Position numbers and translations under genes: made by a program. This document shows, in pieces, positions 1-46,430 of a DNA stretch of 64,000 bases. The stretch comes from Adineta vaga (lineage: Eukaryota > Animalia > Rotifera), in contig CP075492.1 in assembly GCA_021613535.1 (NCBI GenBank), positions 9,300,001-9,364,000 on the forward strand, read 5' to 3'. The notes beneath the pieces are model-generated. The model was not told the DNA's origin, did no database searches, and saw only the letters and a list, made by a program, of their open reading frames with translations. Within the stretch, counting starts at the first letter, position 1, and each line of letters opens with the position of its first letter.

Positions 1-3000
1 GCTTCTAAAACCAATGTGATCGTATTATTTGCTTTAAGAAACATGGCAATGCCAGAAATTGTAGAAAAAGCTGCTTGAATTGAATCGGAGTTATTTGGAT
101 GACTGCAAAGAATCAAATCTAATGTTGTTCGAACAAGAAAATAAAGTTGTTCCACTTGTTTATTTCTCATTGTTGATTGTTGAAATATTTGAATCATTCT
201 AGTTAAGTTCATAACAATATTTCTTATCCTTTTACCTGTTTCGAATAAATCAATTTGTATAGTTGAAATGCCAAATAGAGACATTAGTTCAATAGTAATC
301 GACAAATATTCATCAAAAGAAAGTATTCTTTCACTGGTAAATCTTTTGATAATTGGACTCATTTTTCTTAAGATTTGCTTTTCTCTATCATTAACAAATG
401 AATTAGCAATGGATAGAATCGATTCATAAGTGATTGATTGACGATTAAGTTTCTTATGTAACAATTCCAATATTGATTGAAGGTTATCATGAAAATCTGA
501 TGGAAGATAAAGTTGAATAGTTATTTGAAATTGATTTAATATTTGTTGACTATCGTTTGATTCGATCGATTCAATGAAATTATAAACTACGATAAGTCTT
601 TTTCTCAAATTTCCGTTTGATAAACAAGATGAAACAATTTTTAATGTAGTTTTCAATAAATCAATCTTTGTTTTATCGGTACTCTTTTTTGCGCGTTGTA
701 ATTCTTTTCCTAGAGAGCAAATCGAAGGTAAATAAGATGGTAAATGTGTTTTTAATTCATCTGTAAGAGATAATGTTTTAAGAATTTCAAAAGGATCACT
801 TGTTTGAGAGAAAACTTTTGATAGATTACTAACAATTGATACAGCTTGCGTTGGTGAGTTTTGAAAAAATTCACATGCGACTAAATGAACAGCTGCTTCT
901 GAATCATAATTTTGAATATGTTGAATTAATTGTAAAATAGAAGTTAAAGATCGACCAGTTTTGACATCATTTAATAGAATAATCATTTCGAAAGCAAATT
1001 CAAGAGAATCTTTTGTTGCTATTGATTGTGTTAATAGACCATCTAAAACATTGACAATTTGACAAATTTCTTTTTTCATCGAAGGAAAAAGTGCAGTAGT
1101 TTGTGAAATAGCTAGTATCTTTTCATCATCTTGTAAATTTACGTAAATATTTGATATAACTTGAAGTGTAGGAGATAATTTCTCCGATGCCATGATCGAT
1201 GCTACGGATAAGATAACTGGAATAAGAAGTTTTCGTTCGATAGCTTGTGTATAATCTAATCTTTCTACTAATTCGAATATATGTTTATATCTTTCTTGAT
1301 TTGGTAATAAAGTAGAAAGTTTTTTCAATGCATGATATTTATCTATTTTAAGTAGATTTAATACTTGGAATGATATTGAAAATGCTCTACTAGTTTCTAT
1401 ATTATAATTGTCACGCATGTTTTTCAGAAACATTTTCTCTTCTTGTTGTTCGTTAGTAGTCCATAATTTAATTCCTTCATTGAAACCTATTCGAACACTA
1501 TCAGGTAAGAAAAGTGCAATGGATTTCAAAGCTGTAATTGGTTCATTTAAGCCACGCTTAATTATGGTACCTAAACTAACTTTATCATTGTTAACAAGTT
1601 CAGGCTCAATAATTTGTTGACTCCATTCACAAATGTGTTGTCTTGAAACTCTAGAATTTGTCAAAGGTAGAGAGAAAAATATTTGACGAGCCTTATCAGA
1701 AACTTTGTTATTCGATACTAGAGATAACATTTTATCCACTATGAATATATCTTGATTTTCCATTATATTCGACGATTGCATTGCTTTGACAATAGGTTGA
1801 AGAGATTCTTTTAATTGAATATTAGGAATACATTCAATTATTTCTGGAATTATTATATGCATATTTAATTCTGAAAGTTTTTCCTTGGATATTGTTCGAA
1901 GATTTTCAATTGAATCGATAATAGAATCTGATTGATGTCGAGATAATCGTGTACTTCTATTCATCCACATGGCCAATTCGTTGAAAGATAAATCGTTCAT
2001 ATCATTCAATAATTGATAACTGAATTTAAAAGCATCAACTGGTGTTATTGTCTCCGAATTTGTTAATGAAATAATTTCTAACAAATAATTTGTTCGTTGT
2101 TTTCTTTTATGTGGACAAATGATCTCATAGAGATTTGATATATGAAGCATAATTTCATAAAGATTATTTGCTGAAATTGCATCGAATAAGTTTCGTAAAG
2201 TCGTATTTAATCGATTTCGGTTTTGAATTTGAAATTTTGTAGCAAAATATTCTTCAATTTTCGTAAGAGTATCTGCATTTGGTACTGAATTTGAAAATTG
2301 ATAAGACTGTTTGATCGATTTGCGTATATAATCGAACCCTTCCAAAGCCGGTCTTGCCATTTGATAATAATAATAATTTGACCAAAGTGCACAATCAAGG
2401 AAATCTTCTGATGATGATAAATTCGCTAGTTTTAAAAATATTATTGATAAACTTTGACAATTATTAGAACCCAAAGATAAAACTGATCCTACTATATTTA
2501 AATACATTTTTTTACTACAAACTGATGTTTGATCGGAAAGAACAATAGAAGAAAGAAGTATTTGTAATCCATTAATCATTTTCATATCAAAATATGGTTT
2601 TAATGACAAACAAAGATCAATGATTATTATTGACCAATTTCTAGTTGTTTGAATCCTTTTGTTTAAATTTGATATGGAACGATGTAGACAATGAAATGCT
2701 TCTCTCATATCATCAGTAAATCTCGATGATAGAAGCATGAATGTAAACGGAATAGAAATTAAATCATTTATATTTAAAGTAGTTTTATCATTCATTAATT
2801 TTTCGTTTAATTCAATAAAATCAATCAGATTTTCATATTCATTTGTTTGTTCACGAATAAAACTAAAAATCAATCGTGTCGATAAAGAACTATCAATACT
2901 GGAGAGAAGTTTTTGAACTAAACCAATGCCAGGTAATATAAAATTTAATTCGTGAGCTTTGTGAACAATTAAATTTTCAGTAATTGTCTGAGGATTGAAT

Positions 3001-6000
3001 GCAAATTGAAGTAAATAATCAAGAAATTTTAATGAATTATGAGTCGATTCCGAACTTATTTGTAAAAGAAGATTTTTTATCGATGGATAAAGTGTTTTAG
3101 TTTGTTCAACTGTTGTTATTGTATCGAGAACTTTTTCAACAAAGTTTTTCAAGCGTTGTTGTTGTTTTCCTGACAATGATGTTCTATTAGGTTGAAAACT
3201 AATCAAATCAATTGCATAATCTAGAAGACGTTTCTTTGCTTTTTCTTCGCGTCTTGGATTGAGATGATTTTGTCGTTCGTATTCAATTAAACGTGCTAAG
3301 ATCTGTTCACTGGGTACTTGAGCGTATTCTTCGAAGAAGATTGCTAAATTTTCAGCATAATGAATTGCGAATGCAAAACTTTCCTCACTTGTACTGCCCT
3401 TTGGACCAGATATCACACGAGATAATGAATCATTAAGAATCTTCTCTAATCTCTGTTTTAATTCGGTCCATTCATTGTTTGAAATTGAATGTAATGCTAG
3501 AAGAAGATTTCGTCGAATTGTTGATATATAATCTTGATGTTGATTTGAATCAGATTCAATTGCTGTTAGAATCGACTCACAAGCTGCAGATAAATTGTAT
3601 TTGGTTGATTTGGATCGGTATAAATTAATGCATTCAGAGTAATTATAATCGGACTAATAGCAGTTGCTGCTCTTTGTGAATAAGGTTTTGTATTATCCTC
3701 GAGAAGAGCTTTGAATCGTTGTTCAATTTTTGAATTATTCAAATGTTGCCATGATGTTGGAAGATTAATCAGATGAGTTCGAGTTGATAACTCTTCAATG
3801 GATTTAATGCGTCCTGTTATAATTAATCTATTACTTTGAATTGTGTAAGTTGAAAATCGAGTAAGAAATGGTATATCAATTCTGAAAACGCCATTCATTG
3901 CATTCTCTTTGATTTCAATGAAGTATACTATTGTTCGAGAATTTCCTGGAGAAACAACGACATTTCGATCGCAGTTTGGTATATTGAAATCAAACGTATT
4001 ATTTTTTGTTTCTTCTGGATTAATTTGACCTGAAATATTTCCAGTATTTCGAATGACAATTGAAAAAGGACCTAATTTTGAACCTGCTGTTGTTGTACCA
4101 CAATGAAGAAATGGTGGATCAAATGAAATTATTGGCACCATACGTTTACAATGGAAAGGTATTCGGATAAATGTTTCTTCAAAATTTCCTTCGAGAATCA
4201 AATTACAGTCAAATGAAACTAATTTCTTTTGAACTTCATAGATATAAGGACAATCAAATTTTTTATATGGAAGAATTTTCAATGGGAGACGAACTTCTTC
4301 TGGAATAGTTAGATAAGCTGATGTTGCATGAATATGATCGATAATCATTGGTACTGGACCTTTATTGTATAAAGTAATATTATCTATGATTTGTTCTTTA
4401 TTTTCTTCCACTTCTAATTTTGTTAGAGATTGAAGTAATGCAAAATCTAATTTAGGCCAACCAGCTGTTGTTTTAAATTTCAATTTGAATCGAGGATTTT
4501 GTATTCCATGAACAAAATGAAGTTCAATTGTATTGATCAAAGATTGATGAATAGATTTGATATGAAATTGAATTTGTAATGGTAATGATCTTCCAGGATC
4601 TAGAAGTGCATTTGAATGTGATAAATGTGTTACTATAGTCGATGAATCAGGATCAGTTTGTGTTTCCAATACCATTTGTATTTCACCTGTATTTCGAACA
4701 ATGAATTCTTCCGAAAGAATTGTATTTGGAAGACAAGCTTCTAATTCTGTCGTGTATTCCTTTCCGGTTAGAACCTGTGATCGATAGATAAGTTCATATG
4801 TAATACGTCGAGTCTTACCCACACAGAAAATACGATATTTGAAATCTTTTCGAAAATAGATTTCATAAGTACATGTCGCATCTTGTATTAAATCTTGAAT
4901 ATTCCAACGAATAGTTAATGTTCTTGATTCATAAGCCAAAAGAAGTAAATTTGAATTTCGATTTTCAATTTCAAATCGACCTGTTGCACCGCCTTCTCGT
5001 CGAATTTTTACCCGAAGATCAACTGATGTTGGATTTGTTATTGTAAATGGCTGTGTTAGATGAGACGTTGAACGTAATGCAACAACACCAAAATCCATTA
5101 AATATGTTTGAATTGGACTCGTTGATGTCGATTCATTTGTAGTTTGATATCGTGGTAAATTAATATCGATAGAAAATTGTCGAATTTCACAACGAAGAAT
5201 AAGAGGAATTGTTAATTGATGATTAAGTAATTTCATTTGCCATTCTTGACTATGTTTACCTTCTTGAACTGTACTATCAAGTAGAACTTTAATTGAACTA
5301 ATACTTTGTGGATTGACAACAAATGTTAATGGTTGAATTGTAAATACAGTGGAGGAATTCTCTGGCGAATTTGATAAAATTGTAAAATGAAGTTGATCAT
5401 CACTATCATTAAAAATTTCAATGGTCTTCATTTTCATTTGTACTGGTGACCAATGTTGAGTGACTTCTTTCATTTGAATAGTCAATGATGAACAAGAAGA
5501 GGAGTAAATTCCTTGTCGTTTTGTTATTGTTATTTTACTAATCGCTGGTGATCCAATTGATGTAGTTAATGTTTTAACATTGATAACGTTATGAATGACT
5601 TCAGTTTCAAGATCACGAACCGGTTGACGAATTGATCGTATTTGTTTTCTACGTTCTTGAATTGAAGTAATAATTTCATCAAAAATTGTTGAATATGTGT
5701 CGAATTCTTTAGTTGTAAGAACTGATATTTGATCTTTTTTCAACCAAGATTCCTTTATTTCATTGATTAAAGTCAAAGCATTCTCACAATGAACTTTTGT
5801 TTCTAGAGAATATCGAATCAGTTGCATAAATTGTATTTCAATATATTTCAAGTCTTGATTCATTCTTACAGCTGAACTTGAATGACTTGCCATCGTTTGT
5901 AAAGCATTTTTCATTAAATTCAACATTTCACGTGTTTGTAATTTGTCAATACTTTCTGTCGATATATAACCTACACTATCTTCTAATCGAATAGTATAAC

Positions 6001-9000
6001 CTACTCTGTCGATATTATTTAATGAACCAAGTAGTTGTGCTTTAAAGTTGTCATATAAGAAAATTGCATGTTGTATTGAAAGAAACATTTTTTGTAATTC
6101 GCATAAGCCTTGATAAAGTTTGTCGAAATTAAATTTTTCTTGAAAACGTTTTAAGTCTTCTCTTAAAGATTCTGCTGAATTAAATTCAAAGATGATACTA
6201 TTAGGGAACAAGGAAAGTTCATCATCATTAATAATCATATTTAATGTCTGTATGACTTCTGTAATGTTTTTCTTGAAATCTTCATCTTGAGATAATGATT
6301 GTGTCATTAGATAATGATGTGTTAGTGGATTTGATTGGTTTAAAGTTTGACGATCTTTTTCTCGACGAACAGTTGATAAAGAACGAATATCTTCCTGAAC
6401 TGGCATGGGATAATACGATGGTGGTGTAGGCATCTTATATTCTGTTGAACGTATTTTTTGAATCGAACGACATGATTTTCAAGACTTAAAATCCAGTTTC
6501 TAAGTTGATTAGTTCTCTCCTGTGGTTGTAAAAGTTTATATCTGTCATATGTTTCAATATATCGATGATCTGTAGTAGGAATTTCTGTTGTCGAAGTTGA
6601 AGAGTTTTCTTGTGTCGATGTTTGATGTTCGATGACGTTGATCGTTTTCATTAAATTGATGGATAAATTATGATAAATTTCGACAGTGATTGAACTCAAT
6701 CCATAATTTCCAAAACTATATCGAATACTTGTATTATTTTGTTGACACATTTCTTGATAGTCAAGAGGAATACGAATCATTTCTGTCCACCTATCTGTAG
6801 GTTCATAACGTGCACACAAAACTAACCACCAAACATTCTTTGATGATGTTGCAGGATTCGATGGTGACATTATTACATAGCTGAAAAGATTAGATACATA
6901 ATTAGTAAATGCCATGCGTGCCAGTGGTTTCGATGGACCATCGACTACAGTGCGAGAGTCATCGGAAACTAATTGGACCATATTATCCCATGAATTTCTA
7001 TATGTTCTGCCATTCGGATAATCTCCGTGATAACGAACATTTGTGACAACCACTTGAATTGAATCAATCTTGACCATTTGCATTAACTCTTTTCCTTCAA
7101 CATCTTCATTTAATCGACATTCAATTGGAACAGCTTCATTCAAGTTAACTAAATCTTTTATAACTTTTATTACATCATTTGTTAATTTGTTCTGATCATT
7201 GATCACTAAATCATTCGATGGTATCTTTGCAGCAGATAATAAACTACCGATTAATTTCAAATCATTGAATATTTGATTTATATTCAATTTAATTTGCTCA
7301 ATCTTATCTTGTTTTTGTTTACATTGTTTCAAATATTGATTTTCTAAATCACTATTTTTCTCTCGAAAATGTTGAATTCGTCGATCATAGTCAGCTTGAA
7401 TTTGTTGTACAATTTTCTTATTTAGTTCTTCTCGACGATCAACTATTTGGTTAATTTGTTCATTCCATTTTTGTACGAATAAAACTAAGTTTTCTTTATT
7501 CATTTCAGAATGTTTAAGATATTTTTCGTTCATATCATTTTTCGAACCTTGTAAATTACTCATAGAAAGACGTAAGGATTCAAAACGAAATATTTTTGTT
7601 AATCGAGTCAAATAGACAACAAATGGTTCGTCATTAATAAGATCTTTTGATGAATATTTTCTTTTAAATTGTGCAATAGTTAATTGAAGAAACTCTCGAA
7701 TATCATCTGCTTCTTTATCGAATAATCGAACAACTACAGAATATTTCAATTGTTTGTTCTTTGATTTCTTAATCGATACTATTGAAGCAGTAAATGAACG
7801 AAGAATTTGTGCAGCTTGTGTCCAACCTTGGACGAGAAACTGCGCTAATTGTGCGTACCATTCGATGTCTCTATCAAAATTACTTATTGTTTGAGAATAT
7901 CGGACTAAATTTGCGGGCATTAATGTTTCAATAAAAGTAATATCATCGATATTTGAATGTTGGAAATTCTCTTCACGAAAAGGTGTTTGTAAATGTTCAA
8001 TCTGATTTTGTTGAGATTGTTGAAATGATTGAAGAAAAAAGAGAAAATATTCCTCAATTAAGTTTTCTAAGATTGATCTTAAATGATTTAAAGGTTCAAT
8101 CGATTTTGATCGTTCTTTTTGTAAGATTTTAAGAAAAACTAATCCTTGATTTAATAAATTATCTAATTTATCTTCTCGAATATAAATTAAAGTTGTATTT
8201 AAAACAGATTCAATTGGTAAACAAGGAAAATCCATTATAGTAATTAAATCTTTTCGAAATGTTTCAAATTCATTGATTGTTTCTAATTCTAATGAATCAT
8301 TTGAATTTTCGAGTATTTTTACCAGAATATCTCGAATATTACTGATGAAAATATTCAAAACATAACTCACTTGAATAAGACTAGTGGATTTTGTTGGTAT
8401 ATCAATTATTCCAAGAAGTTTTCTTATTTGACGTTCGATATCATCAAGTAATGCAGATGGATTGTAGCAAATATTACTAAACGTATGTGTATACTGAAAT
8501 TCAAGACAATGTTGTAAGAGAATAAAATCATGACGTAAACTTTGATGAAATTCTTTTAATGAATATTCATCAGTTGGAATATTTGTTCCTGGTATATCGG
8601 AATTTTCACGAAAACCACTGAATTGAATTAATTGTTTTATATTATCATCCCATTTGAAAGATTCATTATCAATTGTAAGAATTGATTTTCGTAACTGAAC
8701 CAAGTTTGAAGTGTTTGATTCTTGATTTTTAAATAATTGAATAAGAAAAATTGCAATGCGAGCATAAAGACTCGAACAATGAAAGAGAAGAACTGACAAA
8801 TTCTTTGCTGAATAATAACCACGAGCTTTAACAGCAAAAGTATTCATTTTACGAGAAACTTCAGTTAATTCTTGAATAGTTTGTGGTATTGTATCGATAC
8901 TTAATGTAATTGATGATAAATCGTTGACTTTAACAATTGGTTGAACTAATATTTCTGTATTATTAACAATTGAACGTGTTTCATCCAGTGTACTTTCAAT

Positions 9001-12000
9001 GGATTTAACATGTCGACTAAATTGATCTGGAAGATCATGAAGCCAATTTTGTGTAGAATTTATAAATTGAATATGTGCTAAATTATAAGCTAATATACAA
9101 CGTTGAAAAAACTGATATAATTGATCATTATCATTTAACCATTTTAAAGCTAATTGATAATCTTTGGAAAATTTTTTTAATTCATCATCTAATTTTGAAA
9201 TGGTTTTTTGAAAACGTGATTGAAATTGTTGAAAATTTTCTTGTGAATATCCTCGAACGTTGGTCTTTAATGTAAACATATATTGATAGAATTCTTGAGA
9301 TGTTATTAATCTTGATTGTCTATCATTTGTTGTTTCTATTTGATTTTCAAGTGCATCAATCAAATAAGATGCTAAATAAGTGCTTTTCATTTGTATTCGA
9401 TGATTAATCTTTAACAATTGACTAAGTCGAAAAGTAACAGCTTCATTTAATTTTAATTGAAATTCTTCTTCTTTTCTTTTACATTCATAATCTAAATCAG
9501 ATCTTTGTTTTTCTAATTCTTGACGTTCATAATCGAAATGAATTGAAGTATTCAATTGTGTTTCAATCTTTTCTCTTTGTAATTGAACTCGTTTTAAATC
9601 CTTTCCAAGTTCATCCATTACATGATCGGAAAGATTCAAATAATCTGTGACTAGAATTGTATTCGATGTTTTTAATTTATTCATAAAATTTTCTAGATTT
9701 TTTTGCAATTCATCAAAGATTGTATTTAATAAAGATTGTAGTTGAAGAGCAAAAAATGCATGATATTCATTACATTCAGACAATTGACGATATCCGTATC
9801 TATAAATCTCGACATTTTCTCCAGCTTCTTTGATTCGATCGGTAAATGTTTTTATTAATTTTGTAAGCTCAATCGAAGCTTTTATACCATTGTCATACAT
9901 TAGTGGTAGATTTTTGCCATTTCTATCTTTTAAAATCAATTGATGATCATAAAGTTTTTCGATCGATTTACGGAATATTTCACTTTCAAAACAGCGTTCT
10001 AATTCTGAATAATTTCTAAAATCAAATGTATCAAATGGAATCGATTTGAGAAAAAATGTTGACAAATCAGGAAATAAAAGTGCAATACAATCTGATAAAC
10101 GTAGATAAGATAATTGAATGCCAGCATGTTGATTATAACTAGTTTGATCATGTAGAATTTGTGTTAATGTTTCATGTCGTTTATTAAGTTGAACAAGAAG
10201 AGGATAGAGATGTATTAATTTACACGAATCAACATCTTCATCATTTGTTTTTATCAAAAGAATATTTGTTTTATTACAAGGATTCATTGTTTTCAACTCA
10301 TTATATCGTTGTTGAACAAGATTGACTAATGTTCTCTGTTGAAAATTGTCTAATTTATGTTTTGGTAAATGAAATGAATTAGATATATCTTGACTTTGTT
10401 CTTGACACCATTGTAATAAATCTCGACAAAGTTCAGCTAATGGTCTACAATCTACAAGCATAAATGTACTCATCAAAGATTTCAAAATCTCTATAGTTGA
10501 TTCAATTGATGAATTTGTATCTTCATTTGATAAGCAAAGTTGATAAACTAAAGTTTCAACTTTTCTCCATCGTAATTCATTGGTTTGACTACGAAAATAA
10601 TCGATTAGAAATGTTGATGCTGGATCGTCTGTAGAACATTTTTGATCTAATAATGATTTAATCGATTCGAGAAGTTTATTTTGTTCAACATCCGACAAAG
10701 TCGATGAATGTTGAAGAGTTCTATTTAAAAGATCATTTGAATGATCTAGAATTTGTTCTTGTTTGAAACGTTTCAAATTGAAGATATCCGCTTTTTTATG
10801 TTTAATTGATTCATGTGAAATATGTTTTTTAATTTGTTTTGGATATTTTTTCCATTCTAATAGATTAATATCTGACAATAGTGTTCTACTACGTTTAATT
10901 TCATTTAATTCCATCAATAACATAACAATGGCATGTTGAATTCGTGGTAATTCTTTCTGTTTTGTAACTTGCAATAACTGTTCAAGATCCTGTTCAACTT
11001 TAGATAATTCAATATTTTGAATTTGAAGTATATCTTCATTTGTATCTATCTTAAAAGATGTTGTTCTTGATTGATTTTTTAATGAATATTCTTTAAAATT
11101 AGTTAGAACTGGTTTACTCCTTCGAATCATATCTTCAATTTCAATTTTAGTAAACATTTCCAATTCGTTCATTTCATCCAAAGTTAACTGTTCAATCGTT
11201 TTCATTTGTATCATCGCTGCATATTGTAATATTTGATGATGAAATTCAGTCAATTTTTCTTCGAATTTTTCTATTGAAATTTGAAAATTATATGAATCTA
11301 TTTGATCCATAATGAATTTTACAATGGTTATAAGTAGATTAGCAATTTTATGGGCATTTTTGTAAAGATCAATATCATTGCTATTGTTTTGATTTCGTAG
11401 AATAAGTTGTAAAAATTTCGATTGAATTCGATGTACACGATTGATAAGTGTGGAAATAAAAACATGAAATTTCGTTTGATCATCAGATAGATATGGTTTT
11501 AATTGATTTAAAACAGGATATTCTGCTTGTTTTTCATGAACAAGAGATAAAATTCGAGCTTTTGTATTCGATTCTTTGGGTATACATAATGATAATGTTT
11601 CTTCTAATTTTGTTTCTAATCTTTTAATTTTAGGTCTTTCTAAATCATTTCTTAATTGATCCAATAATCGAACTAAATCATCGAATTTAATTTCTTTTGA
11701 TGATGATGATAATGAAACTTGTTCTAACATTGTTTTTGTTTGTTGAATAATTTTTCGAAAGAAATCAATATCTTTTTGTATTTCAATTTCAATTGAATAT
11801 TGATAAATTTGTTGATCATTTCGAATTATTCCTAAACGTCGTTGATCATGAATCCAATTTAGAATATCTGATCGAATTTGTTCGAGATATTTTTGTTCAA
11901 TTGTAAAATCTTGTTCTTTAATTTTTAATTGAGTTTTTTGAAATAATTGTTTGATAATATACGGAAGAAGAAAATGAACAAATTCTTTATTCATATTTAT

Positions 12001-15000
12001 TGAAAGATGTCGTCGATCAATTTCGAATTGTGTTGTCATTGATCGTTGGTGAATTTCATTTTCAAGAAGATCAATAAATTGAAGGAAAGATTTATCAACT
12101 GTTGTTGTTTCTGTTTCTTGTTCAAGAATGAAATGAATAGTTGAAATTTTCTCATTGAAATGTGCAACACCTGAATCATTGATTAAATATCGATTAAATG
12201 AACTTTTATCAATAATAAGAAAATTTGTCAATTGAACATTAATAATAATATCAAAATCATTATTTAATTCTAAAGATTTTCGTATAATTGAAAGCATAGT
12301 ATCTTCTTTACAAATAAAAAGAAGAATATTCTGTTGAAATAATCTTGGATAAACTAATTGCATCAAAGCAAGAGCTGAACGTCCATGTGCCGTATCAATA
12401 TCATTAAAATTCAATTTTTGAAAGATTTCTCGTCGAAGAATTTCACCATATAATTGTTTAGTATCTTTATCAATACATGTAAATGACGAATAGATTTGAT
12501 TGGAATTATATTCATTTAGATAAATATTAGAAATTGTTTCAATTAATTGATAAATATGATTTTCTTGTCGTTGTTGAGCATATTTACTTATATTTTCTAG
12601 CCAACCTTTTGCTTCGTATTGATTTAAACAAGTTTTAAGTGGGATAAATAAATCAAACATTCTTTCTTGTAATTGTCCGAGTGCTTCTAGAGCAGCTAAA
12701 TGTTCATATTTTTCGTTAATTAACTTATTTTCTTCTTCTTTTGCACGATTTAATTCGCGATCGATTTCATCAACTTGAAGCGTTCCAGATTGAAGAAGTT
12801 GATTGTTTGCTTCATAAATGGCTCGAATTTTTTCATCAATTTCCAATGGATTTGGAAGTAAACTATTTTTATGTTCATTATATTTCTCTTTAGCTTCATC
12901 AAGTTGAGTTTTACATGAATCAATTTCGACAAAAATCTTTCCAAGAATTGTTTGAATACAAAATATTAAATTTAAAGTCATTAATAGATTCGAAGAATTC
13001 AATAGACTTTGTTGTTCATCAAGTTTATCAATAAATTCTGGTTTAATAAGTAAATTCATTGTTAATTTACAAGCAACATTTAATTCTAATTTCGACGCAG
13101 CAATTAAGATCAGTTTCTTCTCATTCATTTCTGATAGATATTGATATAATTTCAAGATAATATCCAAACGTTGATCACCTGAATATATAATTGGTAAAGA
13201 TTGAACTTTTTGTAAATGAACATTAATTAATTTTAATGATGATGCAGAATCATTCGATTCATCATCATTAACAATTGAATTTTGTTGTCGTAAAGATTCT
13301 TGTGTTTGTGAAAGTATATATAAATCATTTTTAGCCATTGATTGACATGGAAATGAAACCCATTTGATATAAGTTTGTAGAATTAATAAACGATTTAGAT
13401 CTTTTCCTATCATATAATTATAATGTTCAACAAGTGAAGATCGAGATGAACGTGAAACAAATTGAAATTTTTTTGCTAATTCTATTAGGTTATGTATCGT
13501 AGAAGTTAATCGTTGTAATTCTTTTAATCGATATTGTGCATCGAGAAAGGAAGTTTGTTGAACAAAATCAATAATTAATTTTAAACATTCACTAATTGTA
13601 TTATTTAATCGAACTATTGTATCGTCTATATGTTCAAATGGATTGAGAATTTTCATTGTTTTGAAATATTTATAAGTTTTTATCAGATATTCTTTAAGAT
13701 CAGACGCGAATGATGTTGATTTTTGATTTGTAGTAAGAAGAAGTTGTGATTGAATAGGTGATATATCGATTCCATTGGCATTTTCATGTTTGATTTTTAA
13801 TAAAGGTTGAATAAAATCGAATAATGTGAGAATATAATCATGAAAATCTTCTCGATTAAATAAATCATTTGGAAAATCTTTTTCAATCATACGTAAATGA
13901 AGTTCTAATATTGATTCTTCAATTGTTGCAGCTAAATTATGGATATGTTTCGATGGTCCATACCATTCCATTTGTTCTTCAAGATTTTGACCTGTTGATG
14001 TTGATGTTAACATAGGTAATGCTAAATAACTTGTTTTATTATGAATTTCTGAATGTTTCAAATGTTCAATAAATGATTTAATTAGAGCTAGTTTGCCTGT
14101 TTTGTCTAGAATGGGATCCAGATAACTTCGAAAGATTGAAATTTTCAATGCTTGTACTGGATTATCTCCTTTCATAGCGTAAGTTTGTACAATTCGTGTT
14201 GCACGTTTTAAATTCTGATATGAATATTTATATGATGGAATTAATTGAAGTTCTTTTTCATTCGATAATTTTTGTGCTGATGCATGAACTCTCAAAAGTG
14301 TCGAAGTTAATTCTTGACCAGCATTGATTCCTTGAAGTTCACCTTTAATTAATTCAGTTAGATCATGTTCATCAACATTATTTACTGTTAATTCTTTATC
14401 CAATGTTTGCATACGAATAATCAAACAACGATTTCTCCATGCACTTGATAATTTATTTGCCATTTTTCGATTTGTATTTGCAATAACAAATAAACGAAAA
14501 TCTTTGTGAATTCCATTACCACGACGATATTGATGTGCATCAGCTGATTCATATAATGTTAATGTTGGTTCAGTTTCAGCCAAAGAATTTAAACGTTCAA
14601 TAACATCACCACGTGCACAATTGATATTATCTAATAGAATCCAATCACCTCGTTCCATAGCTTGAATCAATGGTCCTTTATTAAATGTAAATGTTAAACC
14701 TTCACTTAATCGTTTTGCTAATTTACAATCATCTTCTATTTGATCTAATGTATCAAGATATTTCTCAATTTCATCTGATATGGACTTTTCTTGAGTTTGT
14801 TTTGAATGTTCTAAACCAGTTTCTAATATCAACTGGCATTGTTCGTAAGCATGTTGTGTTTCTTCAAGATTATCTAAGGAATATAATTATATTCATGAAA
14901 AGAACTAATTCGAATTATAACTTACCACTTTCCCAATGACAAAGTATTGATCTCATATTTCGTATCAATGTTTCTGCATCCTGAGATTTCTGTGTCATTG

Positions 15001-18000
15001 GTATTAAAGTTGTTAGTGTAAATCGGACAACATCATTAAGAAACTGTTGACTATTTTGTTTTCGACGTTGTTCATACGATTGTTTATTAATAACTGTCCA
15101 TGAACCAAGTAAATCAGATGTGGTGGTTTCATGATTCAGATTTAAAACCAATAGACGTCTTCCACAAACTCGTGCTAATTCACAAATAATGGCTGTTTTT
15201 CCAGCACAATCATCACCTTCAATCAAAACTGTTGCTTTACTAACTGTTGCTGCAGCAAGTAATTGTAATTTTTCTAAAGTTCGTTGACTATGAACACAAG
15301 CTCGATAGTATGAAGGATATTCTTTCTTTTCAACATAAACAAAACCTAAACGAACATAACCTTGAAGATTTAAATCAGTATCAATCATTGTTTGTCGATT
15401 ATGATGATAAATTGTATTATCCAAAGGAAAACGTTGACGAATTAGATCTCGAACAAGTTCTTGATCCTGAATATTTTCAAAACGAGATGCATAAACAATA
15501 TCAAGATAAACGTGAAGACTTCGAATAAGATTTTGTTCTTCAATTCTATTTAAACTATCAACATCATTATCATTATTGTCATCAATCAAAGATGTTGTCA
15601 TTGAAGACGAATTCGTTTGTTCGGCGAGATTCATATGAGCTCGATGTATGACTGAAAGAGCTCCAATAAGATTTGATAATTTTTCAATATCTCTCAAATT
15701 AAAATCATAGGGTCCACCAATACGACCAATTTGTCTTAATCGAGCTTTTTCATTAATTTCATAATGAAAGATATTGATATTTTTAATTAATTTACTTGTT
15801 AAATAACCAGCGACAAGATGAGGATATAGAAGCGTTTTTGTAATTTGTTCAAATTCTTGAATTTCAAATGGAGCTAAATGAACTTGAAGAAAATGTGTTT
15901 GAGTTGATCGAGGTAATTTTTCTCTTCCGCCACCAGTTGATGTCGGGTTCATTGCAGCAACAACAATTGAACCTTTTATTGGAATTCGTTTTGCTAATGC
16001 TGGTATAAAGAATTCTTCTTCGTTTGCAAACAATGGTGTTAATTGATTCAAAAGATCTTTACTAGCTAAATTTAATTCATCAAATAAAAGAACGGTATTT
16101 TCAAGATTCTTTGTCAAAGCCATGTAGAGAGGACCTTCTTGAAATTCAAATGATCGTTGTCCATGAACAACACGTGGAACAAATGAACCAATTAAATCTT
16201 CAAATGTTGTATTACTACTGAAATTAATACGAACAACATTATAACCTAACATTTCAGCTAAAACTTCGATAATTCGCGTTTTTCCAACACCAGGTGGACC
16301 TATGAGAAGTTGTCGTTTTGATGAATGCAATGAAAATAAAATTCGTGATATATTATTTAAAACAGATTTTGTCACAGCTAATGGAAATTTGTAATCTTTT
16401 GATAGAGGTTTCGGTTGAGGAGCAAATGGTGCAATTAATTTATTAAATTTTAATCTCAAAACTAAATGTTTTCTTTCATTCGATGTTCTTGGATGTAGAA
16501 TTATTTCGTCTTCTTGACACCATTGATTGAGTTCAGTATAAACACCTAATTCTTCGAATTGTTCATCAAATTTCATACAATCATATGAACATTTGAATGC
16601 TGTACGAACTTTTTCCCAAGCAACATTTGCTGATTGTAGTTTTGATATAATTGACTTTTGCGTTTGAGTAACATTGTCAAGAAAAAGAAATTTCGCACAA
16701 AGTGCAGCTGCTTCTTCTATTGGCATTGATTGCCGATGTAAATGTAAACATTCAGCAAATTGAATAAAATGTCGAGAATTTAATTCATCGATTATCATTG
16801 TTTGTGAAATGATTGGTGAAAGTTCTTGAGCAAGTATCTCAATTTTTTCATCGAATTTTGCTTTGTCTCCAGTATTTGTTTCAATCTTTTTTGCTAATTC
16901 TTTCATTTCAGTATAGTTATAAGGTTGAACACGAATTTCCGTCATACGTGAACGAGTAGCTGCACTTAATTGTAAACGATGTTCGGTTCGTTCATCGATA
17001 TGTACAGTTGCAAACACTTGAAAACTTGGAAGAATTGGAATTTTTGATCGATGTGCATTATTGTCATTTATTGAATCTCCACTAATAAAATCTTCATAGA
17101 GAGTAAATGATGGTTCAGTTTCGAATAAACTATTTAAACGTTCAATAACTGCTTGTGATGGTTCGTTTATATCTTCTAAAACTAAAATTTGTCCTTCCTT
17201 CACGGCGCTTGTTACAGGTCCATCTTGAAAGAGAAAAATATTCGTTTTTCCATCTTGAATTGCTTTTCGAATTTCTTTTATTATTGTCTCACAACGAATT
17301 TTGATTAGATTAACACCATTTTCGTATTGAACAAGACCACATAAATGACTCAACTGTTTAATTGTTCGTTGTAATGTTTCATCAATTAACTTAAAAGCTT
17401 CAGATATTGGATTGACATCAATCGGAATGTTTAATGAGGAAGTCGAAGTTGATCTTGAGAGATCTGAAAACATTTGTGTAGCATGAACAAATGTTAAAAG
17501 TTGGTCTTCTCTTGACATTGGTATTTGATTTCGGACTGGTTCTTGGTCATCATCGTCATCATCATCATCAGCAGCAAATGGATCTTTTACTTTCTCTCGA
17601 ATTACTGAGACTATAGCAGTGGGTTTAACAATCGGAGCATTTGGTTGAATGATTCCATCATCATCATCATCATCAGCCGCAAAAGGATCATGAATTTTCT
17701 TTCTTTTTACTGTTGTTGTTGTTGTAAATTGAGGAATCGATACATTTTTCGCATTTTCATCTACATCATTATCATCATCAGCCGCAAAAGGATCGTGTAT
17801 TTTTTTTGGTTGTACTGTTGTGGTTGTTAACTGAGATGTTGATGCTCTTTTTGTATTTTGATTATCATCATCATCATCGTCAGCCGCAAAAGGATTGGAA
17901 GATTTTTTTTGATTTTGCTGATTTCGAACAATATCATTAATTTCCGCGATACTTTCAATTCGATCAATCTCATCATCATTATCTTTAATAGATCTATAAA

Positions 18001-25961: not shown

Positions 25962-27709
25962 TGAAGCCATTAGCAGCTGGAGAACTTGAACGTCCTTTAG
26001 TTGGTCAATCAGAAGCAATTATTTTAAGTCTTTGTATGCGTGGAAATCGTTTACCTCATTTGATGTGTTGTGTTTCAATTGATGAAATTGATTCATTAGC
26101 TCCAAGACGTGATGAAGATTCATCCGAAGGAAAAGTTGCTAAAATTAGTGTTTTGTTATCGGTTATTGAAGGTATTAAAGATGTACCTAATCTAATGTTT
26201 TTCTCGGCGACAAATCGTTTACATATGATGGATGAGGCTTTTCTACGTCGTATGTCCGGAAAATTCTTTGTTGGTCGTCCATCATCTAATTCGAGAAAGA
26301 AAATTCTTGAAAGTATTCCAGATCATATTATAAAGACGGAAATTCGAGAAAAATTAGCAACAGCGACAACAAATTTTAGTGGTGCTGCACTAAGGTAAAT
26401 TCTATTTTTTTTAGTAAACTTTATCGAATAAGAGTATTTTAGAGCGTTAACAAGCGCAATTACAGTTCATGACATAGCTGTACGTCGTAAAGAATCGGAA
26501 TATGAAATGAAAGAAGATGAAGCATTATTATTAGCTGATAAAGTAGCTCAACAATATCAATTATTCCTTGGTCTTGATACATTACCACGCTTAATTTTAC
26601 AGAATCTTTATGCACGTCAGCAATCGTTGTCAAAAAAAACTGAAACAATTAAAATTGGACTATTAGATGAATATCGTTTTACAGGAAAAATAATAATTAG
26701 TTTGGAAAAAAATGAGAGATGCGTTCGAATTGAAGGAATTCGATCGGAAAATGATGAACTCTATATTATTCCAGATAATTTAAATAATACTGAACAAAGT
26801 CTTCAACAATTACTTGAACGTATTACAACCTATGGAAAAGATCGTAATGTTCAATTGTTACAATTAATTGATTTAAATTTACTATCATCGAAAGGTGCAT
26901 ATGATGAAAAGAAAATCTTTGAAACATTAAAAGAACGTTATGATGAATGTATTGCATATAAACGTTCAATGATTGTTTATGATCTTGATTCATTAGTTGG
27001 TGTAAATCGATCGGAATCGGAATCATCTATGGGAACATCGGTTAGTTCATCGGTTGTTAATCAAAGTATTTATACCTATGTTGTCAGTCGTTTTCGTGAG
27101 GCGAAACTTGAAGCAAGTCAAGCGAACAAGAACGAAGTTAACGAACGATGGGCAATTGCTGTTTCACGTGATCAATTTTTATTGAAAAAATTTACAAGCG
27201 ATGTTAATTTTACATTAACAGACGATCAAGTAGAAGAACAAGAAAAAGAAAAACGTCGTTCAACAGTTCCAATATTTTGTGCAAAATGTCGAGATAATTA
27301 TCTTGAAACTGAGAATAAAATGAGTGCTTGTACTTATCATGATGGTTTTGTCTACGATAATTTGTCTGATGGTTTAGAGAGATGCTTTCCAAGTACAGCA
27401 ATTCAAATATTGAATAGAGAAGAGTCACTTCCACCACCAGATGCAGCACAAAAGGATCAGGTAGATCGCAGAAAAATTCGTTTCAAATATATATGCTGTT
27501 CTGCAACACTTCAAGTTGGTTCTGGTCATAATGGTTGTAAAAAAGGTGAACATAATTTCGGTGATGAAGATGAGAAAAAACGACATGCAGAAATGAAGAA
27601 GAAAGATTTAATTATCAAATGGGAAAATGTCTGCTTTTATAGCGATGATAATCTTGATGCATACAACGAGCTAATGGATTCAAGAGGAGATCCGTCACTT
27701 GTTCTCTGA
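25962..27709 (+). CDS. Classical-clade (NSF/Cdc48-like) AAA protein, 5'-incomplete (no Walker A), degenerate second AAA, C-terminal CHORD-like Zn motif; may be a truncated gene
   Basis: Walker B VSIDEIDSL, sensor-1 SATNR, DEAFLRR arginine finger, lid TNFSGAAL. Intron 26395-26442 joins the two ORFs in frame. NSF-D2-like SMIVYDLDSL. C-x2-C-x13-C-x2-H...CC-x12-C-x4-H at 27278-27553. Confidence 0.7.
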
Positions 27710-40276: not shown

Positions 40277-43200
40277 CAACAGATTGCTAAAGGATTAATG
40301 ATAAATGGACGACAAGCTCTACGAGACTATGAAGATGAGCTGTTACACTTAGATTCCAAAATATTGGAGCAAAATATGTCTAGGAATCCAAATGAGCTGT
40401 TATCTATTCTCAAAAAATACAATGAACAACAATGGAAAGCAGATATCAGTGAGAAATGGTTTCATATATTTCTTGAAAAAATGAAAAGTCAGTGTTACAC
40501 TGAATACGATTCTGTTTTAACACGAATTGCTGAATATGGTGGTTTTAAACTTATGAAAATCGATGTATTATTGTCTTTAACAATTCAATTCTTCGTTAAA
40601 TTCGAAGCTGATTCTGAAGAAAATCTTTCATTATTTGAACAAATATTTGATTCAATGCTAAGTGAAGGCTACGAATCTATTAAAACTTACGAAAACTGTT
40701 TTCTATCCAATCCATTGAATATTCAGATAGAGAATGAACAAAATGCCTTATATTTAGCTTTAAAATGTTATTTTCATTCATCATTAATTAACTTATTTAA
40801 TAAAGCACAAATTGATACAAATAATACTGAAGTATTGGAAACGATTTTAAATTGTGTTATGAAAGCTGGATGGTGGAAAGGTATTCATGACGAACGAGTG
40901 AGAGAAATCAATTCAATTGATATGAATGTTTTAATTGAAAAATTGAAAGACTACTTTAAGGAAAAAAATATTCCTATAACCAAGGAACCGTCTTCGTCTG
41001 ATAATCGAGAAATTGGTCAAGTACAAGAACCAGAACCAATCGAAGAACATCAAGTGGTTCTTATGTGTATTAGTCAAGATGAAAAACTAAAACTATCTGA
41101 TCTGGTCGCAGCAGGTGAATTAACATATATTAATCAAACTTTTACTCAGGTCATTGATACGATTATTAAAGATTATGTATCAAACCAAAGATTTTTATTA
41201 TTTATTAAAAGTTGCTTTACACCAATAATGTATCTCTTGAAAAGGTGTCAAAATTTAGATGATTTTTTCAAAAGTTTAGATCGAAAATATTCAAAATGTA
41301 AATTAACTGTTCGCAAACCGAAATTAAGTCTTCGCATGTTGATACATATTATATTAACAAATTCCGAATTATCTTTATCAAGAAAGATCATGTCTCTTTT
41401 GAGCAAAAGAAATCCTGTTCCATTTCTACAACCATCATTATCAAATCATCAAAATAACTATGTATTTGTTTCAAATATTACTCATGTTTGGGACTATTCA
41501 AGAGCAACACTTCTTTCTTTCGGTATCGGTCCATGTAAAGGCAAATCAACAATTCTTAATCGAATATTTCTTTCATCATTTGAACGATCTATGAATAGTA
41601 TCTATTTTCAAAATACAATCGATATTGATTTTGGTTATAGTTTTCTCAAACCACGATTAGTAAATATTGCTGATGTTCATGGATCGATCGATAAAACATT
41701 ATTAGAACGTATCCATCAATTATTTAATGGATTCTTGATTCATATTCAATACGAATATTTGCAAAACAATCGTGATTCGTGTCTCAATATTCTAAATGTA
41801 GTTAAAAACAATAAAAAATATTGTTTATTAATTATTCGTGATTGTCCCATCGAAGATCATGAGGATTGTGAAAGAGATTTACTATCGGAAATAATTGGCT
41901 ATGAAAAATATATTTTACCTAATGTATCTGATCAGAATGATCGCGATAATGAAGAGCTTATTTCAACATTAAATGACAAAATTTGGGATACTATGGCAGC
42001 AAAGTGTCCACAAATTTCATCCTCAACTAAAAATGATTTAGAAAATTTAATGGACGAAACATATAAACAAGAAATACATGAAATAGTGAAAGCGATTTTA
42101 CCATTAGAACAAGTGTTAATTGGTGCAGCTGATGGCAAAATTTCCGTGAATGATTGTTTTCCTGAATATCTGATATTTGCTAATTTATGTGAATTAAAAT
42201 CAAAATTAGCAAATTATAATTTCTATGGTAATGGAACTGATGAAGATATCGATAAAGTTCGACGAGAAATATTACAAAAAGAATATGAATTACAGAGTAC
42301 AAAAACATATCCAAGTCGTATTTATAAATTATTTTGTGATATTTTAAACGCACCCAATATGTTGATATGTCTCGATTCATTGATTACACAATTAAAACAA
42401 GCACGTATAAAATATGTATTACCGGCGGATATGGCAAGTAATATTCCTTTAGAAAAAAAACTATCTATCGATGTTTTATGGCGTAATACTATTATATGCA
42501 GTCAATATGAGACAGAAGAAGTACAACAACATCTTCGAAAACAATATTCGGAATATATCAAAGGCGGTTTTCCATTTGAAATTATCGATGGTGATAATTT
42601 CCATTTTCAATATTCATTTTTATATGAAACTTTACAACCTTTTCGTAACTATCGAACATTAGTTATCAGTATCATTGGACCACAAAATTCCGGTAAAAGT
42701 ACTCTATTAAATTATATGTTTGGAACTTTATTTGATGTTCGTGATGGTCGATGTACACGTGGAATTTATGGATCATTATTCAAAACGAATCGAACAGATT
42801 TTGAATATATAATGTTAATTGATACGGAAGGTTTACTAGGCGCCGAAGGACAAAACATTGAATATGATCGTCGTATTGTTTTATTCTGTTTAGCTGTTTC
42901 ACATTTAGTCATTGTCAATGTGGCAGGTGAAATTAATAATCCAATAAAACAAATCTTAACATTATGTGCAGAATCATTGAGCAAAATGGGTGTTACACAT
43001 ATTCCTCAGCCAACTGTGCATTTTGTTCTTAATCAAAGAGCAGATCCCGATATTGAAAAGAATAAAATAGCGATTGATATAATTACTACTGAAGTACGAA
43101 ATCTTGGTTTACACGAATCAATTATTATTAATGAAAATACTTTTCATGCACTTCCAGTAGCATTTCAATCCGAAGGTAAAACATTAACAACAAACAAGAA

Positions 43201-46200
43201 TTTATCTGGTATAATGAAAACTGTCTCTGAATTTATTGAATGTGTTCATTCATTATGTGGAAAAATTCTTGATTCTGTTGCAGATTGTTTAATTCAAACA
43301 AATGAATTCTTTTATCCATTACAATGGTTATCATCATCACAAACGATTTTTGATACCATTCAGAAATTTCCTGATCTTACTTATTATCAAGATATTCATG
43401 AAAGAGATTTAGACAAAATCTTACGTGAACATATTCAACATGATTTAACAAATATATTCTCGGATAAATATCGTCATCATTTCATTACCGAATCTTCGAA
43501 ACAAACTGAACAAGAACTTCGAGATTTATTTGAAAAAGAACAACAAAAGATTGATGAACAAACACGAAACAATCTTGAAGAACGATTCAAATTCTTAAAA
43601 GTTCCAAGTATACTGCGTCGACGAACTGAACAATTCTTGCGTGTACAAGTTAAACAGATGTTCAAAGGTTTACGTGTAGCGACTATTGCCATAAATGAAA
43701 GAGTAAAAGTTGAAGAACTTGTTAGCAAAGGTAAAGGTGAATTACAAGAACTAATTGAAAAACTAATCCAAAATGAACGAAAAAAATCAACAAATGAAAG
43801 AATGCAAAGCGATGATGTTAGAAATGAATTTGATAAAATGTTTGATCAAAAAATTCAAACCATTCGTTCAGCATTTGTTCCAGAAGAATGTCTTAAACAA
43901 GCTTATACAAATATTTATGCAAATTATAATATCTATGAAAAAGAATGTCTCTTGAAATTTCAAGATATTTATTCTGAACATTTGATATTTCTCTCAAATT
44001 CGAATCAATTCATTTCACAATTTTTAAGAGAAGGCTATAAAGCAAATTTAGTTAAAGTTCATCATTACAATCCAAATACAAATTATTCTTCAAATATGAT
44101 TAGAAGTCTTGTCTATTTAAATAAAGATTTACTAGAAAAAATCTTCAATGAATGTTACGAATCATCGGATATGATCGATAATCCAGATGTTTTTCAAATG
44201 AAGATCAGAAATGATATTCAAAACCAAAAATCTATTGAACAAGATGAATCAAAATTAGATGAAAGTCAAATGTATTTTCCAATATCAATCGTTTTTAAAG
44301 AAGTTATCGAACAAATTACAAAAACCATGCAATCTTTGGAAAATAATGAAGTAAGACAAATTCAAATGACATTAATACAAAAGATTGTCGGTCTTATTAA
44401 TTCATTAATAATCAATGTCAATACAGAATTGTCTCCATTTTGTCTAAGTTTATCTCGACCATTGAAATCAATATTTCATTCTTGTGCAATTATTTTACTT
44501 ACAAAATATTATTACAATGAACAAAAGAAGTACTTCGATGAAACGTTAGCAAAATTAGAAACGAAAAAAAATGATCTGAAACAATATTTTACAAATATGG
44601 TTGATCAAGGTACTGAACTTGATAAAGAATATACAATTAAACTTTGCAAAGATTTAAAAGAAACTTTCATTCAATTAATATTCAACGATGGACAAGACAT
44701 AATCGATAATATATTGAATAATTCTACATATCTCAATCGAAAATGGATACAGAATTCTTGTGATGATAAATTATTGATCAATCAAACAATTCAATTTATT
44801 TTAAAATATATACAAAATCCAACAGAATCTTTTGAACAATTATTCAACGAGAAATGGAATGAGATTGAAATGAAGATTAATCGAGAGTTGATATCAAAAA
44901 AATCATATTATGTTGGTATATTAATAGAATTTTTTACTTGTATGAATAGTAAGTGAATATCAAATAGAAACAATTGATTTAATATTGTTTATTTTTAGAT
45001 TTATTGAAAGAGATTGAACAGTTACCATCTTCAGTCAAATTAGCTGATGAAATATTTACAAGTAAAAATACAAATTCATTAAGTATGAACGAACAATTAA
45101 ATGATAAGAAGTGTTGTTTAACAATGCTACTAGATCGATATTTGACTAAGCGTAGTATACCTGATTCAATTGAACAGAATAATCAAAATTATATCGTTAA
45201 TACTGAAGCTGCTCGTCGTTTCAGTCATTATTCAAACCACATATACCAAGTGATGTTCTATCAAACATATTGGTAAAATCTTCACCTTTCAAACAAATTT
45301 CTATTGGAAATTTAGAGATATTTCTACAAGCTTTAAACGAACAGCGCAATAGTTTTATAATGGAATTAGAAAAAATTGATGTTTGTTTTAAAAGTGTTGC
45401 TAAACGAAACACCTATGAAGATCTTTTGGATAAAGTACTTGGATGTTCAAATCTTTGTCCATGTTGTAATCGGCCTTGTGATGTTGATCATACACAAATG
45501 CAATCGAAACCTGGTTCAATGGGTAATGAACATCGTTGTTTATCTGGGCATGCACTACGTGCCATGAATGGTTATAAGTTTGAAGTAACTCAAGAAGCAT
45601 CCTTACTAACGTGTGATCAAATAAAAAATGATTATATTGTTGTTGTTAATCAAAGACGTTATCAATGGTCTCGATTTAAAATGGATCATCCAGATTGGTT
45701 ATTTGATTTACCATTAAATAAAATGGAATTAAACGTCGTACATAAAAAATTTCGAACAATATGGGATAAAATTGGACCACAACTTTGTGAAGCATATGGC
45801 ATGAAATTCGTACAACATATTTCGGAGAGAACATGTGAACAAAAGATCCATGAAGCATATCATTTCATATTACTTTTGGATGCATCAGCATCGATGGGTG
45901 TAGTAAGTCGATGGGATTACTTAATGGATGCAGCTAAAGAATTTCTAGATCGTCGTCGAGAATTAAAAACGGACGATCGATTCACAATAATTGTCTTTTC
46001 CGACCAAACGGAAATAAAGATAAAAGGTCAAACAGTTGACGAAGTCGATCTAGAAATGATATCATATCTTGATGGGAGAACATCTTTTAGTGCTGCATTC
46101 ACTCGTGTTGCTGAAATAATCAATGAATTCAAAAATAAACCTAGTCCAAATTCAATCCATCAAAATTTTGCTATCGTCTTTATGACAGATGGAGAAGATG

Positions 46201-46430
46201 AGAATGATTCAACTAAAGAACTGGATCATTTAATTAATAATCATAAATCTGTTATTAAAAGATTTTGGACATTAGCACTTAGTGATCTTTGTTCTTCGAT
46301 GGAAACTTTGGAGAAAATCAATGAAAAAATGGGCGGTTCATTTTATGATATTCAGAATCCTGCTGGTCTACTTAATGTCTACGCTGAAGTGGCTACAAGT
46401 ACATTTATTCCCAACAATAATAATCAATAA
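40106..46430 (+). CDS. Very large inducible GTPase (VLIG; GVIN1/URGCP family) with C-terminal VWA domain, ~2,090 aa
   Basis: G1 VISIIGPQNSGKSTLLNYMFG, G2 GRCTRG, G3 IDTEG, preceded by GFPFEIIDGD; upstream degenerate P-loop GIGPCKGKST; GCxxxCPCCxRPC Cys cluster; VWA MIDAS LLDASAS...TSF...FMTDGED. Intron 44949-44998 and a 1-nt-deficit frameshift at ~45220. Confidence 0.9.

Follow-up and report, generated by a model that had tools for sequence, protein, structure and literature searches.

Head-to-head genes that share a promoter are known from plant immunity, where the members of NLR pairs such as RRS1/RPS4 have been demonstrated to function jointly. Midasin-like giants, in turn, have no role outside ribosome assembly that we know of. 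Among the VLIG/GVIN GTPases, human GVIN1 forms an antibacterial coat on bacteria, for which it needs co-factors that have yet to be identified (bioRxiv 10.1101/2025.03.24.645074). Genes related to midasin and to the VLIG GTPases lie close together in the bdelloid rotifer Adineta vaga, in a stretch of 64,000 nucleotides (contig C3:9,300,001-9,364,000, hereafter the window) with a G+C content of ~30%, in a genome assembly of 100.8 Mb and six contigs. The order along the window is a giant midasin-like gene (minus strand), an intergenic element P, a gene with an AAA domain (plus), a coiled-coil gene, cc1 (minus), a second element P′, and a gene encoding a VLIG GTPase with a von Willebrand factor A domain (VLIG-VWA, plus). 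Spliced genes were searched exon by exon, and the total protein lengths given below are sums of open frames, without joined protein models. Our re-analysis returned the same gene order and strands as a first-pass annotation, which had read the four genes as an intact, operon-like unit in two head-to-head pairs with a common upstream element. The locus is instead probably a bdelloid gene cluster that arose through local duplications and has partly decayed in the A. vaga reference, and its hairpin coiled-coil proteins would be the partners of its VWA domains.

P and P′ are homologous, as had been proposed: P matches both P′ and a duplicate of P′ in inverted orientation with 89% identity. These three copies are the only ones in the genome and all of them are at this locus, which rules out a transposon or miniature inverted-repeat transposable element; P is thus not the dispersed, high-copy transposon that would have undermined the idea of a shared upstream element. 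A coding exon or a shared leader was also rejected, since no consistent open reading frame (ORF) runs across the copies and the RNA-like contigs described below do not cover P. Both elements are located mid-intergenic with the same polarity. Their coiled-coil side lies 336 bases from the start of cc2, a second coiled-coil gene of which A. vaga retains a remnant, and 378 bases from the start of cc1, while the start of the giant gene is 460 bases away on the NTPase side of P and that of the VLIG gene 244 bases away on the NTPase side of P′. P-like cores were found at the same position and with the same polarity in three Adineta species. Moreover, invariant blocks are common to the giant-side P of another Adineta (contig L023), the VLIG-side P′ of A. 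ricciae and both A. vaga copies, and the element therefore predates these species. P and P′ are best read, on this comparison, as the cores of homologous bidirectional promoters that were copied along with a coiled-coil 5′ gene end. A 15-mer invariant in P showed no enrichment genome-wide, with 35 matches at up to one mismatch vs 21 for a control pattern. The identity between P and P′ is 89% within A. vaga, whereas every cross-species pair, orthologous or not, falls at 66-72%, a pattern that points to gene conversion or recent re-copying; high identity alone is therefore no evidence of selection. For the adjoining giant gene, identity with its counterpart in L023 is 86%.

The head-to-head layout around a shared element is, thus, real, but the left pair consists of the giant gene and cc2, not of the giant gene and the AAA gene as first annotated. 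Left of position 25967, the window aligns with L023 up to the first ~8 codons of the coiled-coil gene. From exactly 25967 on, a point inside exon 4 of the AAA gene just after the P-loop, it aligns with A. ricciae (L018) at 80% identity. In A. ricciae, as well as in an Adineta-like metagenome contig (L025), cc2 immediately precedes the AAA gene, in the same orientation. Because the left flank matches L023 into the cc2 codons, the right flank matches A. ricciae in the middle of the AAA gene, and the two genes are adjacent in A. ricciae and L025, a single deletion of ~5.3 kb (in L025 coordinates) fused cc2, at codon ~8, with mid-exon 4 of the AAA gene; the frames do not match, and the AAA gene lost ~600 residues along with its P-loop. 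Reading from the cc2 ATG (25942) misses the AAA frame and reaches a stop after 15 codons. No orthologous AAA N-terminus was found elsewhere in the assembly. An independent deletion in Rotaria magnacalcarata (L013:580-1758), parallel to that of A. vaga, left the beginning of the coiled-coil gene fused with the 3′ portion of the AAA gene.

Full-length AAA orthologues of ~1,170 aa are present in A. ricciae, L025 and Rotaria socialis (L015). Their N-terminal half is rich in coiled coil, and a P-loop, an AAA domain of the classic type and the DUF8254 tail follow it. In A. ricciae and R. socialis, the P-loop sequence is GPPG|TGKS, interrupted by an intron; a paralogue on contig C5 has GPPGTGKS, and the motif is absent from the window. 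What remains in A. vaga matches positions 30-131 of PF00004 and includes Walker B and the rest of the fold, and its best solved relatives are Rix7, VAT and p97. The AAA-CHORD architecture assigned in the first pass, thus, stands in its AAA part, although without the Walker A motif and the ~600 N-terminal residues. The CHORD profile gave no Pfam match at E<=1 in the tail, yet a CHORD-like Cys/His pattern (C-x2-C...C-x-Y-H-D-G...C-C...G-C-x2-G-x-H) is conserved there. Atlas places this tail in the rotifer-only family DUF8254, and its fold model (pLDDT 37) was too poor for use. The remnant has omega values of 0.03-0.33, its non-synonymous change on the A. vaga branch is the lowest of the three compared, and there is no relaxed constraint. 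Since it is still constrained, the deletion is recent or an intact allele persists.

On the right side, the 7-kb insert reported in the first pass measures 7.0 kb and is flanked by a direct duplication of 1.18 kb, which comprises the two promoter blocks. It is absent from A. ricciae. Its F-box-like gene is a member of a multigene family, whose dozens of copies are spread over all six contigs at 66-78% DNA identity. A mobile element was rejected as the source of the insert, since only this gene is repeated and the rest is essentially unique. At the edges, just inside the 1.18-kb duplication, there are ~50-nt repeats (32104-32153 and 39040-39089) that are 86% alike and have self-complementary ends.

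Parts of the same arrangement were found in other bdelloids. A. ricciae carries cc2, the full AAA gene, and cc1 and VLIG divergent across P′, collinear with the window from 25967 on. L025 carries cc2, the full AAA gene, cc1 and P′, whereas in L023 the giant gene and exon 1 of cc2 diverge across P, collinear with the window up to 25966. In A. steineri, a coiled-coil gene diverges from VLIG-VWA without an AAA gene at the locus. The AAA and coiled-coil genes of R. socialis stand in tandem, the latter divergent from VLIG-VWA, and in R. magnacalcarata the fused coiled-coil/AAA remnant lies beside VLIG-VWA. None of the genes flanking the Rotaria or A. steineri loci was found in or around the window. 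In L025, no VLIG sequence occurs within the 1.8 kb after P′ (L025:13997-15815), and the cluster is rearranged there too.

The coiled-coil genes cc1, cc2 and cc3 are two-exon paralogues, with hairpin products of roughly 950-1,000 aa, and all three are confined to this cluster in the A. vaga genome. The hairpin proposed earlier for cc1 is confirmed, among other things by a fold model of its exon 2, in which a helix (2-183) and a second helix (189-387) are joined by a V-N-P turn, with pLDDT >90 in both arms. This model matches antiparallel coiled-coil hairpins only, such as SMC/MukB arms, chemoreceptor hairpins and dynein stalks. The turn is kept across the three paralogues. The hydrophobic tip of cc1 is conserved in four Adineta sequences and weaker in R. 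socialis, and it is absent from cc2 and cc3. No Pfam family matched cc1, no paralogue was detectable in the genome with its exon 2, and no relative was retrieved from Atlas; none of 8,000 word-sharing candidates from a set of 5.8 billion proteins passed as a homologue, which is weak evidence. The gene evolves fast, with omega values of 0.47-0.51 against A. ricciae and L025, vs 0.07-0.33 for the AAA remnant. The third paralogue, cc3, is located outside the window, tail-to-tail with the 3′ end of the giant gene. It is single-copy in the genome, and the only homologue found is directly 3′ of VLIG-VWA in contig L019. A weak cc2-like match near the AAA paralogue on C5 was discarded, as no long coiled-coil ORF is present there.

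From these comparisons, the older Adineta order is cc3(+) giant(-) <P> cc2(+) AAA(+) cc1(-) <P′> VLIG-VWA(+). P and P′ derive from one duplicated unit, the 5′ end of a coiled-coil gene plus its promoter, giving the divergent pairs cc2/giant and cc1/VLIG-VWA. In A. vaga, the ~5.3-kb deletion took out cc2 and the AAA P-loop, the giant ORF has three, probably five, frameshifts, and the 7-kb insertion with its 1.18-kb duplication left cc1 and VLIG-VWA with a full promoter copy each. Each bidirectional promoter may co-express a hairpin coiled coil with a giant NTPase that bears a VWA/MIDAS domain. The hairpins would be the most likely partners of those VWA domains, as ligands or adaptors, and the AAA-DUF8254 protein may act as an accessory remodeller.

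The assignment of a VLIG GTPase with a VWA domain to the last gene was upheld. Its G domain matches PF25683 with 97.5 bits (cut-off 55), and both the P-loop (GPQNSGKS) and the MIDAS motif DxSxS (DASAS) are intact. Proteins with this architecture, auto-annotated but uncharacterised, are frequent in bdelloids, Brachionus and ciliates. The identity to vertebrate proteins is limited to ~10% of the length. The N-terminal ~280 aa (40136-40970, residues ~11-289) match five loci on contig C1 at 28-31% identity and represent an unnamed shared domain. A literature search combining VLIG with rotifer, or the long name of the GTPase with von Willebrand, returned unrelated matches only, and none of the terms looked for was found in the supplements of an RNA-seq paper on rotifers and a fungus.

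The giant gene comprises eight stop-free stretches that together reach from 24707 to a point 3,735 bases before the window. It had been annotated from base 1 of the window, wrongly, since its stop codon lies beyond that limit. Its product has six AAA_5 modules, a long linker, Ig domains of the HYDIN/ASH type and C-terminal VWA domains; the AAA_5 matches in Pfam fall in five exon pieces, and AAA_lid_7, the midasin lid, matches twice. Five Walker A motifs are canonical, and one module is degenerate. The last exon contains VWA-family matches at two places and three DxSxS motifs of the MIDAS type. The best solved relative is midasin (276 bits). In an exhaustive search, however, non-midasin proteins of 6-8k aa from diverse eukaryotes scored ~450 bits vs ~280 bits for proteins of midasin length. 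The named relatives in this size range are from Chlorarachnion and Epipyxis; two of these long relatives end in VWA domains and one has a HYDIN Ig domain. The gene shares with midasin orthologues the six-module AAA_5 ring with midasin-type lids. Its closest relatives are not midasins, and it lacks a single C-terminal MIDAS preceded by a D/E-rich block: no block is strongly acidic, with a maximum of 27% D/E in any 60-aa window. Because the 6-8k-aa relatives outscore the midasins, the giant is a member of an old family of midasin paralogues and not the ribosome-assembly midasin. A. vaga encodes two further giant paralogues; one is on C5, and the other, at 2.82 Mb on C3, is a single open frame of 8,272 aa (C3:2819926-2828148). 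No orthologue of the window type was found outside Adineta, as two candidates (L024 and P0280) are of the C5 type and the contig of a third (P0281) reaches only 0.7 kb upstream.

The frame of the giant gene is interrupted. The first pass had credited it with one or two introns; there are two real introns and, in addition, five frame changes. Stretches E1-E4 correspond to one ORF of 2,085 aa in the L023 orthologue, and the C5 paralogue is one ORF of 4,536 aa across the E6/E7 and E7/E8 points. The three breaks mapped against L023 are single-base losses, none of them in a homopolymer run. In all, the frame is broken by three single-base losses, probably five. Its ~9,450 codons contain no in-frame stop, and comparison with L023 gives omega values of 0.16-0.45, so that the breaks are either of very recent origin or errors of the assembly consensus.

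Contigs from four runs that are probably RNA (RNA-like contigs) were compared with window positions 24600-30599. They cover 25967-27724, 27739-29346 and 30270-30599, and none lies on 24800-25799. One carries a GT..AG joint (26392>26441). The AAA remnant and cc1 are transcribed, at levels on which these contigs give no information. One contig stops matching exactly at 25967 and has 25 unmatched bases upstream, which would fit an undeleted allele. The loose ends of the RNA-like contigs matched none of the compared loci.

The coordinates of all features are listed in Table 1. The genes encoding an SH2 and tyrosine-phosphatase protein (58845-59645) and a BTB_2 protein (61705-62502), further along the window, are ordinary neighbours unrelated to the cluster.

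Table 1. Features of the A. vaga locus (window positions unless another contig is named)
Feature	Position	Strand	Basis or remark
cc3, two exons of 303 + 615 aa	L005:783-3648 = 7,217 to 4,352 bases before window	+	same layout as cc1; A-N-P turn
Giant midasin-paralogue gene	1..24692, on to 3,738 bases before window	-	Pfam, open frames, motifs; ~9,450 aa
Frame change E7/E8, probably frameshift	3569..3653	-	C5 paralogue reads through
Frame change E6/E7, probably frameshift	6343..6478	-	C5 paralogue reads through
Intron of giant gene	14887..14917	-	also in orthologue L023
Intron of giant gene	18365..18410	-	also in orthologue L023
Frame change E3/E4	19442..19523	-	one base missing near 19475 vs orthologue
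Frame change E2/E3	20503..20638	-	one base missing near 20562 vs orthologue
Frame change E1/E2	24225..24357	-	one base missing near 24243 vs continuous ORF of orthologue
P, core of giant/cc2 divergent intergenic region	25152..25606		homology; three genome copies
cc2 remnant, start codon + about seven codons	25942..25966	+	ends at junction 25966/25967; aligns with cc2 start in L023
AAA + DUF8254 3′ remnant, Cdc48/Rix7-type	25967..27709	+	intron 26393-26440 confirmed; no Walker A
cc1, ~1,005-aa hairpin coiled coil, two exons	27919..30935	-	hydrophobic A-V-N-P turn at about 29389-29457
Promoter block, copy 1	30911..32086		P′ 31313-31670; dead 57-codon VLIG 5′ fragment 31914-32086
A. vaga-specific 7.0-kb insert	32087..39087		F-box-like gene 37246-39036; ~50-nt bounding repeats
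Promoter block, copy 2	39088..40276		P′ duplicate 39511-39864; runs into live VLIG gene
VLIG (URGCP-type GTPase)-VWA gene, ~2,000 aa, two exons	40106..46430	+	Pfam, motifs

Several observations weigh against a cluster of cooperating genes. On C5, paralogues of the giant, AAA and VLIG-VWA genes lie at 1.29, 5.06 and 16.76 Mb without coiled-coil neighbours, and three more distant VLIG-VWA loci, one of them from Brachionus, lack coiled-coil, AAA and giant neighbours. Recurrent co-occurrence at independent loci, of the kind described in prokaryotes, was not observed, and only the orthologous locus has kept the genes linked. The linkage in other species anticipated by the first-pass annotation holds for the coiled-coil, VLIG-VWA and AAA neighbours in Adineta and Rotaria, but the adjacency of the giant gene to cc2 was found in two close Adineta species only, and the 1.3 kb upstream of cc2 in L025 resembles neither P nor the giant gene. 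The A. steineri locus has no AAA gene and that of R. magnacalcarata keeps a fused remnant of it, so the parts are dispensable. In addition, the likeness of P and P′ within A. vaga may stem from gene conversion and not from selection, and any functional coupling of these genes would be read from their neighbourhood. The alternative is a neutral neighbourhood, in which the adjacency goes back solely to local duplication and inherited synteny, gene conversion between nearby inverted duplicates keeps P and P′ alike, as their higher identity within the species than between orthologues suggests, and the products do not cooperate; the unlinked paralogues, the repeated loss of members, to which the A. 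vaga deletion adds, and the lack of genome-wide enrichment of the P 15-mer point the same way. Such neutrality is nonetheless doubtful, because the divergent coiled-coil/VLIG-VWA pair and the adjacent AAA gene have been kept between Adineta and Rotaria without any shared flanking gene, the coiled-coil paralogues occur in this cluster and nowhere else, cc3 stays beside a cluster member despite rearrangement, and P and P′ have blocks conserved across three species. A stronger interpretation, according to which one coiled-coil gene per giant NTPase under a shared bidirectional promoter constitutes a eukaryotic NTPase-VWA-coiled-coil defence module, with a left half (giant, cc2 and AAA genes) that decays together through mutual dependence, seems to us unlikely. 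If true, it would point to the kind of co-factor needed by the coat-forming VLIG/GVIN GTPases. A cell-autonomous defence role is suggested by analogy with the vertebrate VLIG/GVIN GTPases, specifically GVIN1.

The decay itself can also be questioned. The frameshifts may be long-read consensus errors, and the deletion may affect one haplotype only, or reflect a collapse, with an intact allele present in the animal. This is possible, if short of probable. It would account for the lack of in-frame stops and the low omega of the giant gene, for the constrained AAA remnant without excess change on the A. vaga branch, for the fact that all three mapped breaks are single-base losses, and for the RNA-like contig that ends at 25967 with unmatched bases upstream. 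However, these losses lie outside homopolymer runs, the other long genes of the cluster have no frameshifts, the haploid assembly contains no orthologous AAA N-terminus, and the junction cleanly joins two sequences that each have orthologues among known neighbours. The intact four-gene module of the first-pass annotation, with both the small AAA protein and the giant AAA ring working on the VLIG VWA domain and the coiled coil serving as a membrane-attack needle, is in turn very improbable. Its layout and shared upstream element are real, the hydrophobic tip of cc1 is conserved, and VLIG relatives are antimicrobial and need co-factors yet to be found (bioRxiv 10.1101/2025.03.24.645074). Yet the AAA gene is a deletion remnant with neither a P-loop nor an in-frame start from its promoter, and the deletion junction contradicts such a module for this genome copy. 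The giant gene has a broken frame and bears its own MIDAS-type VWA domains, so that action in trans on the VLIG protein is not required; furthermore, cc2 and cc3 lack the hydrophobic tip, and the ancestral unit has five or six genes, not four.

We, thus, favour a cluster built by local duplications and partly decayed in the A. vaga reference. VLIG/GVIN GTPases were only recently shown to coat bacteria, and the cluster offers concrete, testable partner candidates for VLIG-VWA and for the midasin-like giant: a fast-evolving hairpin coiled-coil gene stands head-to-head with each. The short conserved promoter core lends itself to assays of bidirectional co-regulation. Should the giant and AAA genes be truly damaged, the pattern of co-loss would provide evidence on which genes depend on each other. 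The locus also illustrates bdelloid genome dynamics in compact form: within 55 kb there are a duplicated promoter, a deletion that fused two genes, probable gene conversion, and an insertion that left both promoters intact.

Compared with described systems, the giant resembles midasin/Rea1 (MDN1) in its N-terminal region, its ring of six AAA_5 modules with midasin-type lids, its very long linker and its C-terminal MIDAS-type VWA. It differs in being about twice as long, in its HYDIN/ASH Ig-like domains, in having three MIDAS-type DxSxS motifs where midasin has one MIDAS domain, and in the lack of a strongly acidic block. The AAA domain of the small gene is nearest to those of the classic clade (Rix7/NVL, Cdc48/p97 and NSF), but the protein combines a single AAA domain with the rotifer-only DUF8254 tail, and in the window its P-loop and N-terminal half are deleted. 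With the prokaryotic MoxR-vWA pairs and ternary systems (RavA-ViaA, CbbQ-CbbO and vWA-MoxR with a third component), the locus has in common an ATPase of the MoxR/AAA_5 clade genetically coupled to a MIDAS vWA and a further partner, and a bpMoxR profile is weakly matched. This likeness is one of shared domains. The locus is eukaryotic, one giant chain unites the AAA modules with VWA, coiled-coil hairpins and a GTPase of the dynamin superfamily stand alongside, and there is no operon. The protein families are unrelated to those of the plant NLR pairs and joint function in the rotifer cluster is a conjecture, but in both cases two non-identical genes share a short intergenic region, are transcribed divergently from it and have stayed side by side in different species. 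Finally, VLIG-VWA lacks the N-terminal domains listed for the fish and mammal VLIG/GVIN1/URGCP proteins and has a C-terminal VWA/MIDAS, as do its rotifer and ciliate relatives, while it shares with the VLIG/GVIN1/URGCP GTPases an URGCP-type GTPase domain above the Pfam cut-off, an intact P-loop and a very large size.

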